Below are positions 36,282 to 44,763 of a stretch of DNA of 64,000 bases, in pieces. The DNA comes from Oopsacas minuta (taxonomy: Eukaryota > Animalia > Porifera). The notes under the pieces were generated by a model. It was given only the letters and a program-made list of their open reading frames with translations. It was not told where the DNA came from and did no database searches. The stretch is from assembly GCA_024704765.1 (NCBI GenBank), contig JAKMXF010000011.1, positions 913,557 to 977,556 of the forward strand, written 5' to 3'. The stretch's first letter is position 1. Every line of letters starts with the position of its first letter. Made by a program: the position numbers and the translations under genes.

Positions 36282-37685
36282 ATGGAGTTCCACCCTGTGA
36301 TCCTGTGTGGAGGACAGGGTACCAAACTGTACCCATTAGCAGAACAGATGCCAAAAGCTCTCCTTGCTATCGCTAATAAACCAGTAATTTGGTATGTAAT
36401 AGAGTTCTTACACAAATACGGATTTGAAGAAGCTATTATTGTATCACAACCTACTTTCTTTGACAAGATAAAATCGTCTGTAGACACATTTATATCTGTT
36501 TATAATATTCCGATCAAACTTGAGTGTTTAAGACTTCCTTGTGATAAACTTACAGAAATGGGAACAGCTGATGCATTACGGTATATACAGCCGCATATTA
36601 AGAGTGATCTATTAATTCTACCCTGTGATATTCTAATCGATATTCCCCTGCAACAATTCGCGAATATTCATCGTTGTTATAACTCTGCCCTTACAATACT
36701 ACTAACTCCACAAATACAAAATACGCCAGCTGATCAATCAGCTGGTGCTATGAAAACCTATAAAGCAGGTCGTGACGTAATTGCTTTAGCTGAGAAGTCT
36801 GATCGTATCTTGTTGCTACAGAATGAGAGTGATATTGATGAGAAATTATCCCTGACTAGATCTATGTTACTGAAGTATCCTTGCTTGGAGCTGAGAACAG
36901 ATTTGAGAGATACACACGTTTATCTAATGAGTAAAAGTGTATTAGATGTGCTTAATGATTCTAAAGGCAAGAAAATATCTTCTATAAAAGAAGAGTTGAT
37001 TCCTTTAATCTTGCAGAAACAGCTGACTGATTATAAACTTGTGTCTACTAATCCATTAGCTACTGATTCAGCATCTGCATATAATCCTCTTAATGACCTG
37101 GAGCTACTAGCTTACCAGCTGTCAGAAACTAATAGATCAGGACGATTGGATAGAATAATGGTTAATGGAGCTATTCAGGAGATATATTATACGTATGCTT
37201 GTTATCAAATGATACTTAATAGTCCTCAGATTGCTCTACGTATTTCTACTGTACAGGACTTTATAGAGGGAAATAAGTTAATGCAGAAAGAGGCTAATAG
37301 AATGAACTTATGGCCTATTGAAAGGGACCATGGATTGGTTCATGAGTCTGTTGAAATTACAGGGGCTGTTGAGAGGGTTGTAGGAAAGGAAACATACATT
37401 GGAGAATGTTCTAGAATAGATGAAGGTTGTTCTCTTAAGAAGTCCATTATAGGTGTACATGTTATCCTTGGAAAAAATGTTAAAGTATCTAACTCAATTA
37501 TACTAGAGAGAGTTGTCATAGAAGACAATTGTCAGATAATTAACTCTATTGTATGTAGTAGTGCTAGGATAGAGCATGGAACTGTATTGAAGGATTGTAT
37601 TGTAGCAAAATCAGCTGTTATCGCTAGAGAATCAGATTTTAAAGGGGAAACACTGCTTAGAGATGAGATGGTATTTCAATTTTAG
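36282..37685 (+). CDS. EIF2B3: Translation initiation factor eIF2B gamma subunit
   Basis: 'EFHPVILCGGQG..LYPL…PKALL.IANKP', 'MGTADALR', 'L.L.CD', 'D.HVY', C-terminal left-handed beta-helix hexapeptide repeats. Confidence 0.92.
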   Translation: MEFHPVILCGGQGTKLYPLAEQMPKALLAIANKPVIWYVIEFLHKYGFEEAIIVSQPTFFDKIKSSVDTFISVYNIPIKLECLRLPCDKLTEMGTADALRYIQPHIKSDLLILPCDILIDIPLQQFANIHRCYNSALTILLTPQIQNTPADQSAGAMKTYKAGRDVIALAEKSDRILLLQNESDIDEKLSLTRSMLLKYPCLELRTDLRDTHVYLMSKSVLDVLNDSKGKKISSIKEELIPLILQKQLTDYKLVSTNPLATDSASAYNPLNDLELLAYQLSETNRSGRLDRIMVNGAIQEIYYTYACYQMILNSPQIALRISTVQDFIEGNKLMQKEANRMNLWPIERDHGLVHESVEITGAVERVVGKETYIGECSRIDEGCSLKKSIIGVHVILGKNVKVSNSIILERVVIEDNCQIINSIVCSSARIEHGTVLKDCIVAKSAVIARESDFKGETLLRDEMVFQF

Positions 37686-37847
37686 AGTTATCTGGCGTCA
37701 TGAGGTAGGTTTGAAGTTCATATTTGTATTTACATTGAAATTACTTAGTTTATCAATTTGAATGCAGTTATATATTTGTTTATTATTTATATATTTGTCT
37801 TATATATTTGACATTTAATTGCTTGTTTTGATCGTTAGCATTGCCTC

Positions 37848-38351
37848 ATGGCTAGTAAACATCGGAATAGTCCATCGCTTGAAATGCAGCTGAAAAACGG
37901 ACAAGTTAAAATGTTTAAGAAAGGTATTCTCCATTCCTCTTGGAAAAATAGACATCTTAAACTAAATAGGAATTATTTGCTAGTATTCGAGACACAACAC
38001 ACTTACCAACCTCTGGAGAGTATCATCAGAGACGAAATAAGATCAGTGAGGAAGCTAGCTGATGTAGATAACGGATTTGAAATTAAAGTTAAAGAATTCG
38101 AGTGTTACACCTTTCAATGTATAAATCCAGATGATCTGGAGGAATGGGTAGCAGCTCTTGAGAACAGAGTTCCTATATCATCTGCTAGGTTAGACTCACA
38201 AGCTCAAGTTGCTCAAGCTGTCAGGCAAGCTGGTAAGTCAGATTTTCCCGCCCAATTTGAAGCACAACCAGCTGTGTTATACCCAGGGCTACCAGCTAGT
38301 GAAAAGCCAAATGATCAGACACAACCTCCTCCCTACAATACAATGTACTAG
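37848..38351 (+). CDS. Small PH-domain protein with C-terminal PPPY motif (PLEKHB-like)
   Basis: 'KKGILHSSWKNRHLKL…YTFQC…DLEEWVAAL'; tail QPPPY. Confidence 0.75.
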   Translation: MASKHRNSPSLEMQLKNGQVKMFKKGILHSSWKNRHLKLNRNYLLVFETQHTYQPLESIIRDEIRSVRKLADVDNGFEIKVKEFECYTFQCINPDDLEEWVAALENRVPISSARLDSQAQVAQAVRQAGKSDFPAQFEAQPAVLYPGLPASEKPNDQTQPPPYNTMY

Positions 38352-38555
38352 TATTAGAGATATAATCAATTGTTGTTTTGAATTGTTTGCTTCTGTAACT
38401 TTATGAGAAATATATTTTAATCAGATCTATGACATTGTCTACGTGCCTGCTCTATCATCCATGGTTTATCTCTGTAACAAACACCCAAATACATTTGTTA
38501 GTTCAACTTTATACCAATACAGCATATACATGCACAATATACAAACTTAAAATAT

Positions 38556-41500
38556 TCACTTATTGTTTGATACTCCAGTAAGCATAGTCTTTCGATTATA
38601 ATCTTTATACTTGTTTCTGCATACACTACACGTCAGTATATTTATCCACACTTCCCTGGCCTCTCTAACCCATACGATAGATAATGCTACTATTCCCCAA
38701 CAGCAGAAGGTAGCCTCATTTAGTAAGGTCAGGAATGGAGCGTAGTAAGCTTCATAGGACGGGAAACAGCAATTAGGATTCTCATAGAAAGCTGTTATAC
38801 ACCAGTTATATGCAGCCTGGTATGCTTCAGTTATCTTGTAGTTAATAGAGCTGTATGTGAATTGTACTAGTATTATGAATATTAGTACTGATAGAGCTAT
38901 AGAGTATATTGTCATTTGTTTGAGGAGAGATTGATACACATTTGTAGTAGATGTACTGTTAGCCATCTTCTTCTGTCTCTTGTATAGTGTCAGGCCGAGT
39001 AATATAAGCCCTGTCCCAGTGGTGAGTGAGTATACAACTCCAGGTATGTAGAATGTGAAAGCTAGACCATATTCATTCGGGAAACAGAGTATAGGGAAGG
39101 ATAAGTGCGTATATCTTCTGGTAGCGGCTAATACTATTGCTATTATTAGCGCAGGTAGACCCCAGCATATTATAGACTGTAATATGTGTATCTTGACACT
39201 GTTAGCGAAGAACTTTACTGATTTCATTGGGTATAGCAATACGAATATTATATTGAAGATATCACACATGTACCAACCCAGAAATGACAATATAAAGTAA
39301 TGGTAGATTGGACCTAGAAAATTGAATGTGTTAAATTCCGGTGAATATTGGATTTTATGTTATCACTAACCTTGTATTTGACATTGTATAGTAGGATTAT
39401 CTTGAGAAGTTAGGAGATTATCATTCGAACAGAAAAATTTTCTGCGATCTACAGAGCCTATAAATATCATCAAATCTATAGGAATTCAATAATTTTATTA
39501 TTTATTTTAAAAATTAGCAATCCGGTAATGGCAGCAGCCATGCACTTAGAAGGTTTACGTCGCCAGTACGCGGTAGATCGGCAAAGATGGAAATTTCTTA
39601 ACGAAGAAACGAAATTCTCCAAATACGATGCTACTAAAATCGCTGAGCCACCGAAAGCTCCTCGCCGTGTCAAGACCTTCTCAGCTAACCTAAACCGGAA
39701 TGTACAGGAAGTCTGGTGGCCGTTCCGTACAGAAAGACCTTACACCGGTTGTTTGAAGAAACGCCTCTCAGAAGTTGACTATTTTACTCAATGGTAACTA
39801 TTCTGTATTGACAATTCGTTGTCTATCTATTTTCCTTGTATTCTATAACACCTCTATGATCTCCTTATTCTATAAATAGCCACAAATATCCTTATATTTC
39901 ACGTTATTATTTCTTAATTAGATTTTATATAATTATGAATGCTAAAACGAGAAGAAATGTTATCTTATTCAATCTCTCCACATTTGGTGTTGGTATCTGT
40001 AATGCTGTATTCAACATATACTACGTTAAATTCTATATGGACCAGTACAAGGTTAATGCTACATACTTCTATTGGGCTCAGATTATATTCATGATATGGA
40101 ATGCCCTAAATGATCCTCTACTTGCTTACCTACAAGATGTATCTAAAATTAAACTATTCCGCAGTAGAAAACTGTCTTTGTACCATGGATCATTTTGGTT
40201 GGTGGTCACGTTCTTGTTGCCATGGTACGAATGGTATGTGTTTTTACCCTTTAGTGATGAGTTGAATATTGGCATTCATTTGTGTTTCACTCTCTGCGCT
40301 TATGACACTATGTTCACGTATATAGGATTAGCTCAATCTGCGGCATTCGCGGAATTATCACAAGTACAAGAAGTGAGTTTATTTCTTTTTTTATAACTAT
40401 GGATATTACATGTTTATTCTCTGAAGGTACGTAGAACAACAACTCTATCTCATGAGCTAACATCTCTTATTACTGCTACTTTTCTAATCGGTGTACAATA
40501 CACTACAAGTCATGGGCAATCTATTCGCGGTATGCAATACACAGCTATAGCTATAGCTATAATAGGATTTATTTGTCAGCGTTATGCTAGTAATTATCTG
40601 GAACTAGATAGTGATATGAGTCTTGAAGGAGAGAGACAGCTAGAGAGTGAGGATTGGAAAATTATTAGTATTCAAGTACTAAAGAATAAGAATTTTCTAG
40701 CATTCGTTTTCATGAATTTTGGGCAGATTTTCCATAAGACTTTTAGCTCTAGTTTTTTCAATATATTCTCTCGTGACGTCATACCAGAAACAGCTCTTAA
40801 AAGCCACTTCATCTTGTTCTCTTCAGGAATAATGTTCTTTCTACCTCAACTAATCGTGCTGGGAGTATTCGCACCTGCTCTACCCAAAGTTGGGGCTTTC
40901 CGTATTGTTATGACGTCTCATATAATTACTATGTTTTCCCCTATTATAATATATATCCTAGGTATGCAGCATCCTTATCTTATCATCCTATACATGACTA
41001 TAGATTCAGGCCTCGCTTCTGCTACGTTTTCACTATTCAATATGTTGGTAGCTGACGTCATAGACTCTGATACTGCTATGTATAACAGGAAAAAGCCAAT
41101 TTCTTCCATTATATTCGGTTTGAATGCTCTGTTCACGAAACCTGCTCATTCTCTATGTCCCATGCTTGTGGTGAATATTTTAACAAGATATGGTTACCAG
41201 GAAACGGACGAAACTAAATCTTTATCTGTACAAAACGCGGAATTTCACATGCTTTGTTTGTTACCAGTTTGTATTGGGCTCTATCAGATATTGATTTGGA
41301 GTAATTATTCTCTTCGCTCTACTCACGAGAAAACTGAAGCTGACAAGACAACCATTATTTAGCTTATCCATGGTCCAGTCTTAATATCGCAATTTTCGTA
41401 TTAGTAATGCTTTTGATTATAAATACTTACCTTCCATAATCACACACACGATCAGGTATAAGGATATAATGTGAGGGAACTTCCATCTGAATATAAATTG

Positions 41501-43332
41501 GTAAATTGTACAGACATTTTGAGCTAAATTTAATAATAATTAACAACTTACAAACTCTTACGAAATAACCATGTAGATGCCCCTATACTAGCTGCTATTA
41601 GAGTTATAAATGAGAGTATAGGAACTATTATTATGAGTATGTTGTAGTACGTCTGTCCTCCTGGGAACCACACGAGACACTCCGGTACACACTGAGTACC
41701 ATTACTCACGAATGTAGACACACAAGTGAAATTTGTTGTGTTGAAACCACCTAGTAACAGTGATAGAGAAAGAATCCATCTAAATAATCTTTAAGTTAGG
41801 ATTAGTATTTGTAAGCAGATTTCAATTGTATTTTAAACAATAATGATGCCATTTATTCTAGCACTCTTTCAATAGTCCTTTCTTAGATAAATTGGCTTGC
41901 TTTCTTATTGCATTATATTATCGTGTTTATTGAATGAAGGCATTTCGATAACAGTCAACTCTCGTAATATCGAACTCAGATATCCGCTTATATGGAAGTC
42001 TGAAATAGTACACATATGGTCCAAAAGTAATATAATTTTCATCAGTTTTATGGAAGTTATTGTCACTGTCCATTGAGCTTCGATATAACTGTGGTTAACT
42101 GTACATACGTTTAATCATAAACTTACCTGTTGCTACTCTCCGTAATTCATCTATTGCAGTTTGTATTGTAATATTTCTTGTACAGCTCTCTGGCCTCAAT
42201 ATATTTGATACTGTTTCTTCACTCTAAAATACAATTATTAGCTTAAAAAGTTGAAATGTTTGCACTCGCTCGAATGAAGAAAGAAGAAGCTACAGGTGTT
42301 AAAAGCGCACGAGTAGGGGACACAATCGTAATGACACTCTTAACGAAAGAAATTGCTGCTCTTGAGCAAGCACTACCCAAGACTTGCAAACTTAATTTTG
42401 TTAACAGAGACGACCTAAGACATTTCCATATCAACGTGGTACCCAAGGATGGAATGTGGAATAAAGGGAAATTCGTATTTGAAGTTGAGATACCTGTGGA
42501 TTACAACATGAGTCCTCCGAAAGTGAAATGTCATACTAAAATATGGCATCCTAACATAACGGAGCAAGGAGATGTGTGTTTGAGTTTGCTCAGACAAGCT
42601 AGCTTAGACGGAACTGGATGGTCACCGGTTAGAACTCTCACGGACGTTGTTATCGGTATTGACGCACTTTTCGCAGATCTCTGCAATTTTGAGGATCCAT
42701 TAAACGAAGATGCAGCTAAACAGTTCAATAACGATAAAGCAGGTTTTCAGCGTAAAGTGAACCAGTACATACAAAGATACGCTAGCTATTAAGAGCTGTA
42801 CTGTCTGTGTTTTGTTTGTATTAACTTATTGATTGACTTGCTAACTTTTGTTTTATATTGCATTTAAGTCACTGATTCATGCTTTGTTTGTGTTAGGCTA
42901 ATTATCAGTAATAATAGTCTGCAATAATTATTGTTTGAGTTATTCATACAAATAAGGTAAGGTACTTACCAGTGGGTCGAGTCTGTCTAGGAAATAGTCA
43001 GCAAATGCCCAAATAAGCCATACAGAAGGTACTATGAAGACTAACCATAGAGATATAATCATTAGTGAGGATACTAGACTAGCTATTATGTTCTTCTGCT
43101 TCTTAGGGACTGTATTTTCATATCTTTGGTATACTGACTTTACTCTTTGTCGATCGAGCGGTTCATCAGATCTGTTTATTGATTCTACTTCTATAGTTGA
43201 TCCATTTGTTGTAGCCCAGTTATCATATTGATAAGATACTTTATTATTGGTAACTTCTTGACTATCTCCATGTTCTTTCTCTGGATCTGTATTTGGATTA
43301 ATTTCTGTCATTTCTATCCAATATCTCCACAA
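38556..43332 (-). CDS. Frizzled/Smoothened-like multi-pass receptor, predicted six exons: 43332-42970, 42223-42127, 41750-41552, 41486-41431, 39475-39371, 39313-38556 (525 aa)
   Basis: All five introns are GT-AG (donors GTAAGT x4, GTTAGT) and exon phases chain into one ORF. The product has 'CVPEC..W' before TM1, 'WKFPH', 'C..QG..YHYF.L..LGW', 'CWGLP', 'LCF' and a Cys-rich ECL3, as in Fz/Smo-class 7TM. The last four exons are well supported; linkage of the first two is less certain. Confidence 0.72.
39528..39797 (+). CDS. Small 89-aa basic protein of unknown function, inside the receptor intron
   Basis: Good start context (GTAATGGCA), more GC-rich than its flanks, compact ORF; no family recognised. 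Confidence 0.5.
   Translation: MAAAMHLEGLRRQYAVDRQRWKFLNEETKFSKYDATKIAEPPKAPRRVKTFSANLNRNVQEVWWPFRTERPYTGCLKKRLSEVDYFTQW
39935..41362 (+). CDS. MFSD13A: MFS transporter MFSD13A/TMEM180-like; intron 40373-40426
   Basis: 'YYVKFYMDQY…AQIIFMIWNALNDPL', 'DVIDSD…R…S.IFG.NALFTKPA.SL.P'. Phase-0 54-nt intron GTGAGT…GAAG joins the two ORFs in frame. Confidence 0.88.
41951..42102. mobile_element. Degenerate MITE-like element (Tc1/pogo-type CAGT ends) in a receptor intron
   Basis: Left end ACAGTCAACTCTCGTAATATCGAACTC; reverse complement of the right end TACAGTTAACCACAGTTATATCGAAGCTC; imperfect TIR. Confidence 0.4.
42256..42792 (+). CDS. UBE2F: NEDD8-conjugating enzyme UBE2F
   Basis: 'LP.TCK..F', 'YNMSPPKVKCHTKIWHPNITEQGDVCLSLLRQASLDGTGWSPVRTL.DVV', 'NFEDPLN'. 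Confidence 0.93.
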   Translation: MFALARMKKEEATGVKSARVGDTIVMTLLTKEIAALEQALPKTCKLNFVNRDDLRHFHINVVPKDGMWNKGKFVFEVEIPVDYNMSPPKVKCHTKIWHPNITEQGDVCLSLLRQASLDGTGWSPVRTLTDVVIGIDALFADLCNFEDPLNEDAAKQFNNDKAGFQRKVNQYIQRYASY

Positions 43333-43650
43333 ACCTATTTATTACCAAATCATATAGTCTCTCAATGGCATTTAATTATCGTATTATATTTCTGTGTAAG
43401 TACAGATAAGCTATAGCATCGTATAACTGGCCTATAGAAGCAATGTGAGCAGCTATTTCCTGTATTAATAATCCTTTCGTTCGACAGCACTCCTAACTTG
43501 TGGTCAATGACCCCCCTTAGTGATCCACATGCGATAGCAGGGCATCCACAGGATATAAAATTTGGGAGCTACTGGTTAAAAGGGGTTTGGAAACGATACG
43601 ATATAATACTATCGATTTATTCATAAGCTATTTATCTATCTATCTATCTG

Positions 43651-44763
43651 ATGTATACACACGTCTGGAGCTTACTCACACTATTCAGCTACATGCTATA
43701 CACCATGGATCCTGTAACCAGCTCTCTTGTACAAATCCCCACTCATAGCTGCTTTCAGGAAGACCTTACATTTGTGTGTAGTACCAATAAGCCTGACAAT
43801 ACCGAGTACTTAGTTAATCTGGTAATATCAGTTCTTCACTATCCTCCTATAGATACATCTCGTATAATACATTCAAACGCGTACACTGACTCATCAGCTG
43901 TTTATCAGAACTTAACAATACAATCCGTATCACTATCAGAGGCTCCAGCTAGTGTAGTATGTATATCTATTGAATGGTCTAACATGACTAATACAGTTAT
44001 ATCAACAAGTATAGAATCTAATGCTTCTATACTGGTAGCTCCTTATCCTGCTGATGTCACTATTCTATCCCTTAAAGTTGTGACTGAGAGTGGATTCAAA
44101 CTTGCTATACAGCATAATGGTGTAGTTCATAGAGAGGATTTACTCTCTTACGTCATTGGTATATCTGATCCCATGTCTAAGTTAAATTATTCAGTTTCTT
44201 ATAACGATCTTCCTGATGAGATATTCTCTGTTAATAACCTGTTTGACACTTGTTATAATATAGAGATTAACACTACTAATTGTATAGGTGCTACCATATA
44301 CTATTCCACCAGTTTATATCTCCCTAAATTGAGGAATGAAACTTTGACTCGTTTGTCACTAACTGAGTTTTGCTGGTACAATGAAGATGCTAGTACTATT
44401 TGCCCTGGACCTTATGACGTAGATTTTACACAGCAAAATATGTTCACTTTCTCTCTAATAAGGAATAACAATATTGTAGCAAACATTACAGGATTCAGTA
44501 CAATGTTACCGACAGAATTCTGCTTCTTTGTACCAGAAGAATATCTCGTATTTAATCCTATATATCTCAGAATACATATAGAAGGAGTACGGTTAACTAT
44601 TGATGATATAGCTATACCTGTTGATGACGTAATACCTACATTAGCTGCTAACACAATTGTTATTATCTCAGCTAGTGTAGCTTCTGCAATTGTTATCATT
44701 TTGCTGGTGTTACTCCTGGTTGTTGTTGTGTGTGTTTTCTCTGTGATAAAGACAAGAAGATAG
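43651..44763 (+). CDS. Type I membrane glycoprotein with Ig/FN3-like beta-sandwich ectodomain and almost no cytoplasmic tail
   Basis: Signal-like N-terminus, beta-rich segments with N-glycosylation sequons, 'Y.I.I…NC.G' FN3-like end, long C-terminal TM. Confidence 0.55.
   Translation: MYTHVWSLLTLFSYMLYTMDPVTSSLVQIPTHSCFQEDLTFVCSTNKPDNTEYLVNLVISVLHYPPIDTSRIIHSNAYTDSSAVYQNLTIQSVSLSEAPASVVCISIEWSNMTNTVISTSIESNASILVAPYPADVTILSLKVVTESGFKLAIQHNGVVHREDLLSYVIGISDPMSKLNYSVSYNDLPDEIFSVNNLFDTCYNIEINTTNCIGATIYYSTSLYLPKLRNETLTRLSLTEFCWYNEDASTICPGPYDVDFTQQNMFTFSLIRNNNIVANITGFSTMLPTEFCFFVPEEYLVFNPIYLRIHIEGVRLTIDDIAIPVDDVIPTLAANTIVIISASVASAIVIILLVLLLVVVVCVFSVIKTRR

Follow-up and report, generated by a model that had tools for sequence, protein, structure and literature searches.

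Can a single receptor gene carry three complete genes of the opposite strand inside its introns, and what kind of receptor would such a gene encode? The question is raised by a locus of the glass sponge Oopsacas minuta that lies in a stretch of 64,000 nucleotides, hereafter the window (GenBank assembly GCA_024704765.1, contig JAKMXF010000011.1, positions 913,557 to 977,556 of the forward strand); unprefixed coordinates below are window positions. An original prediction, made from the letters alone, had joined six minus-strand exons into a hidden Frizzled/Smoothened-like gene with three antisense genes nested in its introns. The best explanation of our results, and one that we hold to be quite probable, is a six-exon gene for a divergent, sponge-restricted class F receptor of 518 amino acids, whose introns enclose three independent, conserved genes on the opposite strand.

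The exon chain and the genes inside it

The host gene runs for 4.76 kb along the minus strand from an ATG at 43311 to its stop codon. Exon 1 (42970..43311, 342 nt) begins with the ATG and encodes the cytoplasmic N-terminus, followed by an additional membrane helix (TM0), and exon 2 (42127..42223, 97 nt) continues in phase with a variable extracellular segment. Three linker-domain cysteines and the first transmembrane helix (TM1) are encoded by exon 3 (41552..41750, 199 nt), the motif WKFPHIISLYL and the start of TM2 by exon 4 (41431..41486, 56 nt), and the end of TM2, the cysteine of the first extracellular loop (ECL1) and a cysteine atop TM3 by exon 5 (39371..39475, 105 nt). Exon 6 (38556..39313, 758 nt) supplies TM3 to TM7, helix 8, a cysteine-rich tail and the stop. 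Together the exons total 1557 nt, or 518 codons plus the stop, and a check of the phases exon by exon found no internal stops. All five introns end in AG; the first four donors, beginning with that of exon 1, are GTAAGT and the fifth is GTTAGT. Each of the five predicted junctions stood as a GT-AG intron, but the predicted length of 525 amino acids did not, having come from a bacterial-style open reading frame (ORF) start at a TTG at 43332. The first ATG, at 43311, lines up with the ATGs of the orthologues and gives the correct length of 518.

Introns 1 (42224..42969, 746 nt) and 4 (39476..41430, 1955 nt) are the ones that enclose other genes. Intron 1 holds UBE2F, a NEDD8-conjugating E2 of 178 amino acids encoded by a single plus-strand exon (42256..42792). 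Intron 4 holds two further plus-strand genes, a TMEM180/MFSD13A-type MFS transporter (39935..41362, in exons 39935-40372 and 40427-41362) and a conserved ORF of 89 amino acids (39528..39797). In both introns the predicted nesting was borne out, with all of the UBE2F coding sequence inside the first and the coding sequences from 39528 to 41362 inside the second. The expectation that other introns measure about 50-140 nt held for the three short ones checked (65 nt for host intron 3; 57 nt for host intron 5, 39314..39370; 54 nt within the transporter gene) but failed for host intron 2, which is 376 nt long (41751..42126).

The identities of two of the nested genes follow from their matches. The UBE2F ORF matches Pfam UQ_con (1.3e-34) and, among PDB entries, is closest to UBE2F (1.7e-56), ahead of UBC12 (1.7e-30) and UBE2D (5e-23). 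Both exons of the transporter match Pfam MFS_2, and the best named relatives of its 473-amino-acid orthologue bear the name 'transmembrane protein 180' or MFSD13A and come from Cnidaria, Placozoa, echinoderms and vertebrates (E 1e-89 to 1e-60). Its 54-nt intron (40373-40426) is in frame with GT-AG ends in O. minuta, and the counterpart at locus L001 of another assembly is one continuous 473-codon ORF. Pfam and PDB searches with the 89-amino-acid ORF found no match. A language model likens it (score 0.92) to mollusc and rotifer proteins that are themselves uncharacterised, and the ORF may encode a small animal protein that is broadly conserved but has no name. Scanning 38000-44000 for Rfam families and tRNAs gave no hits, and the long host introns therefore hide no RNA genes.

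The original prediction had proposed synteny in related species as a check, and the arrangement was recovered in four of four other assemblies, all glass-sponge-like (loci L001, L007, L008 and L009/L010; ENA ERZ25071281, ERZ25069837, ERZ25766962 and ERZ25072730). The host orthologues are 61-83% identical to one another, and the assemblies therefore represent distinct species. All four keep the six exons with their order, GT donors, AG acceptors and phases, with a UQ_con gene between exons 1 and 2 and an MFS_2 gene plus an ORF of 87-89 amino acids between exons 4 and 5, always on the opposite strand. Exon 4 is the most conserved host exon (83-89% identity); the values are 71-78% for exon 3, 71-82% for exon 5, with its methionine conserved, and 64-70% for exon 6 among orthologues. 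Exon 1 is 43-55% identical, with its GT donor conserved and the sequence past the donor not. For exon 2 identity is 42-55% (E 1e-6 to 8e-9), and L001 shares its length of 97 nt and its splice sites. In the same nested positions, UBE2F is 92-97% identical across the assemblies, TMEM180 75-88%, and the small ORF 61-70% across the four. When the locus is aligned across five species, invariant columns make up a fraction of 0.34, 0.40, 0.55, 0.70, 0.59 and 0.47 in exons 1 to 6, compared with 0.18 in non-coding DNA. Microsynteny also extends beyond the host: genes for an eIF2B-gamma-like nucleotidyltransferase, PH-domain, ankyrin-repeat and EF-hand proteins and FNIP (window 36282-38351) occur in the same order in L001, L007, L008 and L009.

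Homologues with uninterrupted coding sequences bear on whether the exons belong together. A HMMER search with exon 6 against 1.8 billion representative proteins returned 31 homologues, several of them about 500 amino acids long and uninterrupted, and in the intronless ones the stretches matching exons 3, 4, 5 and 6 are contiguous. Each exon peptide was then compared singly with a profile of 12 intronless paralogues. Exon 1 fell on profile positions 24-81 (E=7e-7), exon 2 weakly on 101-118 (E=0.036), exon 3 on 142-199 (E=6e-20), exon 4 on 206-222 (E=2e-7), exon 5 on 226-258 (E=1e-9) and exon 6 on 261-496 (E=3e-55). The six peptides thus fall in gene order and without overlap, and by this comparison the chain is far beyond chance. 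It is comparative evidence, rather than RNA, that supports reading the six as one gene hosting three nested genes.

The public annotation reads this DNA differently. Exon 6 matches, at 100% identity, a GenBank model of 285 amino acids (P0040) entitled 'hypothetical protein LOD99_13515 [Oopsacas minuta]', which consists of exons 5 and 6 only, starts at the exon 5 methionine and uses the exon 5/6 junction; it has no TM0, linker or TM1 and lacks most of TM2. The description of the gene as hidden is accordingly right for exons 1 to 4, which are absent from GenBank, but not for exons 5 and 6, which are annotated in this truncated form. Taken at face value, the model would make exons 5 and 6 a stand-alone gene and exon 1 a separate gene for a small membrane protein, with no nesting. 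ORF calls on the other assemblies likewise give exon 1 and exon 6 as separate ORFs, and the exon 5 methionine at which the model starts is the conserved one. We nevertheless regard this reading as very improbable. Exons 5 and 6 alone would yield only TM3-TM7, an incomplete receptor, whereas exons 3 and 4, the best conserved (71-89%), have conserved splice sites and phases and run exactly into exon 5 on the paralogue profile. A usable start codon is absent from exons 2 to 4, and the reading frame past the exon 1 donor is not conserved (in L001 it meets a stop two codons on); exon 1 is therefore needed and spliced. On these same two grounds exon 1 was rejected as an independent small gene. The host was also considered as a pseudogene, and this was rejected because every exon is open in five genomes. 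Moreover, annotation settings are the stated likely cause of low nested-gene counts in some genomes, including the 83 nested genes of O. minuta (PMC10282587).

Two forms could also coexist, a six-exon mRNA and a short transcript whose promoter would lie within intron 4, head-to-head with that of the 89-amino-acid gene, and which would give the 285-amino-acid product. Such a promoter would agree with the start of the public model in exon 5, and the small ORF and exon 5 diverge from each other, with 52 nt between the ATG of the one and the acceptor of the other, which fits a shared bidirectional promoter region. The product, however, would be a five-helix fragment without obvious function, and an annotation pipeline unable to nest genes would account for the short model equally well. 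We consider the two-form arrangement unlikely.

Two points do count against the six-exon gene. The exon 1/2, 2/3, 3/4 and 4/5 junctions draw their support from conservation, only the exon 5/6 junction being present in a public model, and exon 2 shows low conservation and scarcely any match to the paralogue profile. We still prefer the six-exon gene, and under it LOD99_13515 would be a five-helix fragment of a gene for 518 amino acids, its first four exons lost to an annotation that disallows nesting. A census of G protein-coupled receptors (GPCRs) or of the Wnt pathway built on the current O. minuta annotation will under-count and misclassify such genes.

Placing the receptor

What, then, does the host gene encode? 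Standard domain searches say little. Pfam, PF01534 included, matched none of the host exons taken separately, and a six-frame search of the O. minuta genome with PF01534 found 0 of the 12 loci of the receptor family to which the host belongs. Among the homologues, 2 of 15 matched PF01534 at E<=1, the best at 5.9e-6. A protein search seeded with the family alignment brought back close paralogues only, none of them named, and so did not widen the range of taxa. The named family members are all from Oscarella; one of them passes Pfam 7tm_2 (3.3e-5) and carries the NCBI name 'adhesion GPCR G7-like', and another matches Frizzled at 0.0027.

Profile comparisons point to Smoothened (SMO). A profile of 15 full-length homologues, glass-sponge and Oscarella mixed (A2), matched Smoothened at E=4.3e-14 and hit 13 SMO sequences, with adhesion GPCRs at 1e-3 or worse and no Frizzled at E<=10. 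This alignment takes in the CxxxC of the linker, the motif in TM2 and the cysteines of ECL1, TM3, ECL2 and ECL3 and continues through TM7 and helix 8. The Oscarella-type profile alone (A4) reached SMO at 2.3e-11 (profile 76-459 against SMO 179-553) and FZD5 at 1.6e-4, and the Smoothened signal of A2 comes mainly from its Oscarella-type members. The glass-sponge profile (A3) is homologous to A4 over its full length (hhalign probability 100%, E=3.8e-53), and the family profile aligns with a Pfam-positive class F gene of O. minuta on C302 (hhalign probability 94%, E=1.4e-7).

Individual residues and the fold agree with this placement. Cysteines that are invariant in the family align with those of SMO CGIQC, IVCRAD, LSCVI, GICF and VLCQ, and the host has matching cysteines in exons 3, 5 and 6. 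Through the family profile, the CxxxC of exon 3 corresponds to CGIQC of the Smoothened linker and the exon 4 motif to the Smoothened segment RYPAVILFY; the conserved extracellular cysteines may pair as disulfides. The fold was modelled on P0003, an intronless paralogue about 30% identical to the host protein. Its AlphaFold2 model (predicted local distance difference test, 75.7; predicted template modelling score, 0.73) is closest to SMO and then to FZD, by Foldseek (2.7e-8) and by VIA (Z 26.6 over 327 residues, root-mean-square deviation 3.8; FZD Z 22.3-25.6).

Two hallmarks were looked for in vain. The Fz cysteine-rich domain (CRD; PF01392) is absent from host exons 1-3 and occurs genome-wide only at C11:834359 and C22:510529, and a regular-expression search for KTxxxW found none in exon 6, six orthologues or seven paralogues. 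Ahead of TM1, the extracellular part of the protein amounts to no more than about 100 residues. The predicted topology is a cytoplasmic N-terminus of about 70 residues, TM0 and then the seven-helix domain (7TM), making eight helices with both ends intracellular. The receptor would thus comprise a cytoplasmic N-terminus, a signal-anchor TM0, a linker of about 100 residues with class F cysteines, seven transmembrane helices, helix 8 and a cysteine-rich tail. We file it as a divergent class F-type receptor nearest Smoothened, but neither a Frizzled nor an orthologue of Smoothened. The earlier label, Frizzled/Smoothened-like, survives at the level of class F (profile against Smoothened E=4e-14; paralogue fold nearest SMO and FZD) but not as regards the Pfam Frizzled threshold, the CRD or KTxxxW.

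Some results pull the other way. The glass-sponge-only profile is not significant against PDB, where SMO (0.05) and ADGRG3 (0.06) are nearly equal, and because of this the class F link of the host is transitive, running via the Oscarella-type members. A phmmer search of PDB with exon 6 gave only a weak adhesion-GPCR match (ADGRG6, E=0.039), and in the P0003 fold ranking other GPCRs come close behind SMO and FZD, a few Z units apart (Z<=23.9). The host might therefore be a GPCR outside class F, either a short adhesion/secretin-type (family 2) or a cAMP-receptor-like protein, its likeness to Smoothened being superficial. The near tie at about 0.05 and the exon 6 match would suit such a protein, as would the Oscarella member over the 7tm_2 threshold, the UniRef label 'G-protein coupled receptors family 2' for LOD99_13515, and language-model neighbours that mix Dicty_CAR, 7tm_2 and Frizzled. 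Against this, the mixed family profiles place Smoothened 8-10 orders of magnitude ahead of adhesion GPCRs, and the SMO match extends from the linker domain to TM7 and helix 8 with the linker, ECL1, TM3, ECL2 and ECL3 cysteines aligned. The alignment to the Pfam-positive class F gene and the lead of SMO and FZD in both structural rankings argue in the same direction, and we judge a receptor outside class F to be distinctly unlikely.

As a class F-type receptor, the protein probably answers to a ligand, small or lipidic, held in a 7TM/linker pocket, and signals via heterotrimeric G proteins. Wnt, Wntless and Dishevelled are reported to be missing from O. minuta, which keeps Frizzled B (PMC10280926). 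Wnt binding by the host is unlikely because the CRD is absent and the sponge has neither Wnt nor Dishevelled. A bolder proposal, which we offer as possible though doubtful, is that glass and homoscleromorph sponges carry an undescribed, Pfam-invisible Smoothened-like expansion in which CRD and signal peptide were swapped for an N-terminal anchor, bringing the helices to eight; in an animal that has no Wnt, Wntless, Dishevelled or Hedgehog ligand, its members would be ligand-independent or lipid/sterol-sensing GPCRs and could belong to whatever replaces Wnt-type signalling in syncytial sponges, and the interleaving, anciently fixed, would couple their expression with that of UBE2F, TMEM180 and the small ORF. 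A limited literature search found no description of this 12-member receptor family. Glass sponges reportedly have no Wnt or Dishevelled but one Frizzled. An unnoticed class F-type set that Pfam does not detect bears on what class F receptors do without canonical ligands.

Paralogues, packing and the order of events

How the three genes came to lie inside the host can be approached through its paralogues. The family has 12 loci in O. minuta, with relatives in Oscarella. Apart from the host, these are C33:733597, C321:134126, C354:745025, C354:753435, C354:21692, C3:41044, C266:268187, C255:441842, C255:444267, C177:554394 and C335:56716, among which two pairs are close neighbours. Nine loci are single open frames of 484-637 amino acids and hence intronless; the copies in the window and at C33 and C321 are split. 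The C354:21692 copy is interrupted by four stop codons and may be a pseudogene.

The closest paralogue of the host is the C33 copy, at 40% identity. Both it and the C321 copy have breaks between exons 3, 4, 5 and 6 at similar, approximately located places, the gaps in C33 measuring about 217, 244 and 84 nt and those in C321 about 450, 220 and 500 nt. The C33 counterpart of host intron 4, at about 244 nt, is gene-free. No nested gene was seen in the C33 or C321 copy, and the C33 gaps are too short for the genes nested in the host. Because these two paralogues keep similarly placed, gene-free breaks between exons 3-6, we infer that the introns came first and that the three genes were enclosed later in the host copy, before the five lineages split.

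Within the host, the packing is tight. Nested coding sequences nearly fill their introns (72% and 94%); the UBE2F ATG lies 32 nt from the exon 2 acceptor (25-48 nt in the other species), and the TMEM180 stop lies 68 nt from the exon 4 donor. Nesting within introns is true of the coding sequences; with start-codon gaps of 25-52 nt, the 5' ends, untranslated regions and promoters of the nested genes probably overlap host exons. Host transcription would run antisense through all three nested genes. Because UBE2F starts 32 nt from host exon 2 and the small ORF 52 nt from host exon 5, overlap between the sense and antisense transcripts would be almost certain, which would give scope for interference or mutually exclusive expression. 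Transcriptional interference, which the original prediction had also raised, is plausible from the tight spacing and is put forward as a hypothesis only.

Short non-coding blocks are conserved as well. Three in host intron 2 (41871-41880, 41836-41847 and 41804-41819) are invariant in the five-species alignment and lie upstream of UBE2F in its orientation; in minus-strand sequence the blocks within 41804-41880 read AAGGACTATT, ATCATTA.TG and TCTGCTTACAAATA, and the surrounding introns have diverged. Another block of 22 nt (42846-42867), in host intron 1 directly past the UBE2F stop, is invariant in the five species too. These blocks are candidates for UBE2F promoter or control elements, for 3'-end signals or for branch-point signals of the host.

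Comparison with known systems

How does the host compare with the other class F genes of this sponge? Some 78 kb ahead of the window, at C11:834359-835714, is the canonical Frizzled of this sponge, with an Fz CRD (45 bits) and a Frizzled 7TM domain (153 bits) in one open frame of 579 amino acids; presumably it is what the O. minuta paper calls FzdB. At C302:327976-328974 (L005:1785-3227, minus strand) is a further class F gene that lacks a CRD; it encodes a signal peptide and has a Pfam Frizzled score of 122.7 bits. It matches Smoothened (5e-25) better than any Frizzled (FZD3, 2.6e-18) and is much closer to Smoothened than the host family is. Passages in PMC9695228 (citing Riesgo 2014) and PMC4302439 report Smoothened-like sequences in hexactinellids, of which the C302 gene is the likely counterpart. 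It would represent a Smoothened-like receptor in an animal reported to have neither Hedgehog nor Wnt ligands.

Smoothened itself (4jkv, 6o3c, 6xbj) is the best match of the host family in both sequence profile and structure. The two share the linker CxxxC, the ECL1, TM3, ECL2 and ECL3 cysteines, a TM2 motif (FPxIIxFY compared with YPAVILFY) and a long TM6/ECL3 region. Unlike Smoothened, however, the host has no CRD and no long C-terminal tail, and an extra N-terminal membrane helix replaces the cleaved signal peptide. Identity is about 13%, the Pfam Frizzled threshold is not reached, and the family has 12 loci whereas Smoothened is single-copy. With the Frizzleds (O. minuta FzdB and FZD1-10) the host shares the class F 7TM fold (VIA Z 22-25.6, on the paralogue P0003 model), but it has neither the Fz CRD nor the KTxxxW Dishevelled-binding motif, and the mixed profile brought up no Frizzled.

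Dictyostelium has CRD-less Frizzled/Smoothened-like receptors, a multi-gene family with a class F-like 7TM in an organism without Wnt or Hedgehog ligands. Compared by description only, they resemble the host family in being CRD-less, class F-like and multi-gene, but they belong to a different lineage. To our knowledge, the extra N-terminal helix has no parallel among the Dictyostelium receptors.

As for the nesting, it is a documented hallmark of glass-sponge genomes, with glassin as an example that is nested in both Aphrocallistes vastus and O. minuta (PMC10282587). A. vastus has 2432 nested genes (12.4%), many of them conserved, compared with 83 in the O. minuta annotation, which is shown to miss such genes, and the low counts of some genomes, O. 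minuta included, are ascribed to gene-prediction settings (PMC10282587). The claim of extreme compaction by nesting is therefore right in that nesting is present, but it is not new, as about 12% of A. vastus genes are nested (PMC10282587). A specialist would not be surprised by nesting already published for glass sponges; what is mainly gained here is a correction of the gene model, together with a receptor family that had been poorly described. In addition, the locus offers a compact, conserved test case for the coexistence of sense and antisense genes. Like other glass-sponge host and nested pairs, it belongs to a very compact hexactinellid genome and has complete genes lodged in the introns of another. 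What distinguishes it from those described in the A. vastus paper is that as many as three genes, all of them antisense, are enclosed by two introns of a host only 4.8 kb long; the arrangement is conserved across five genomes.

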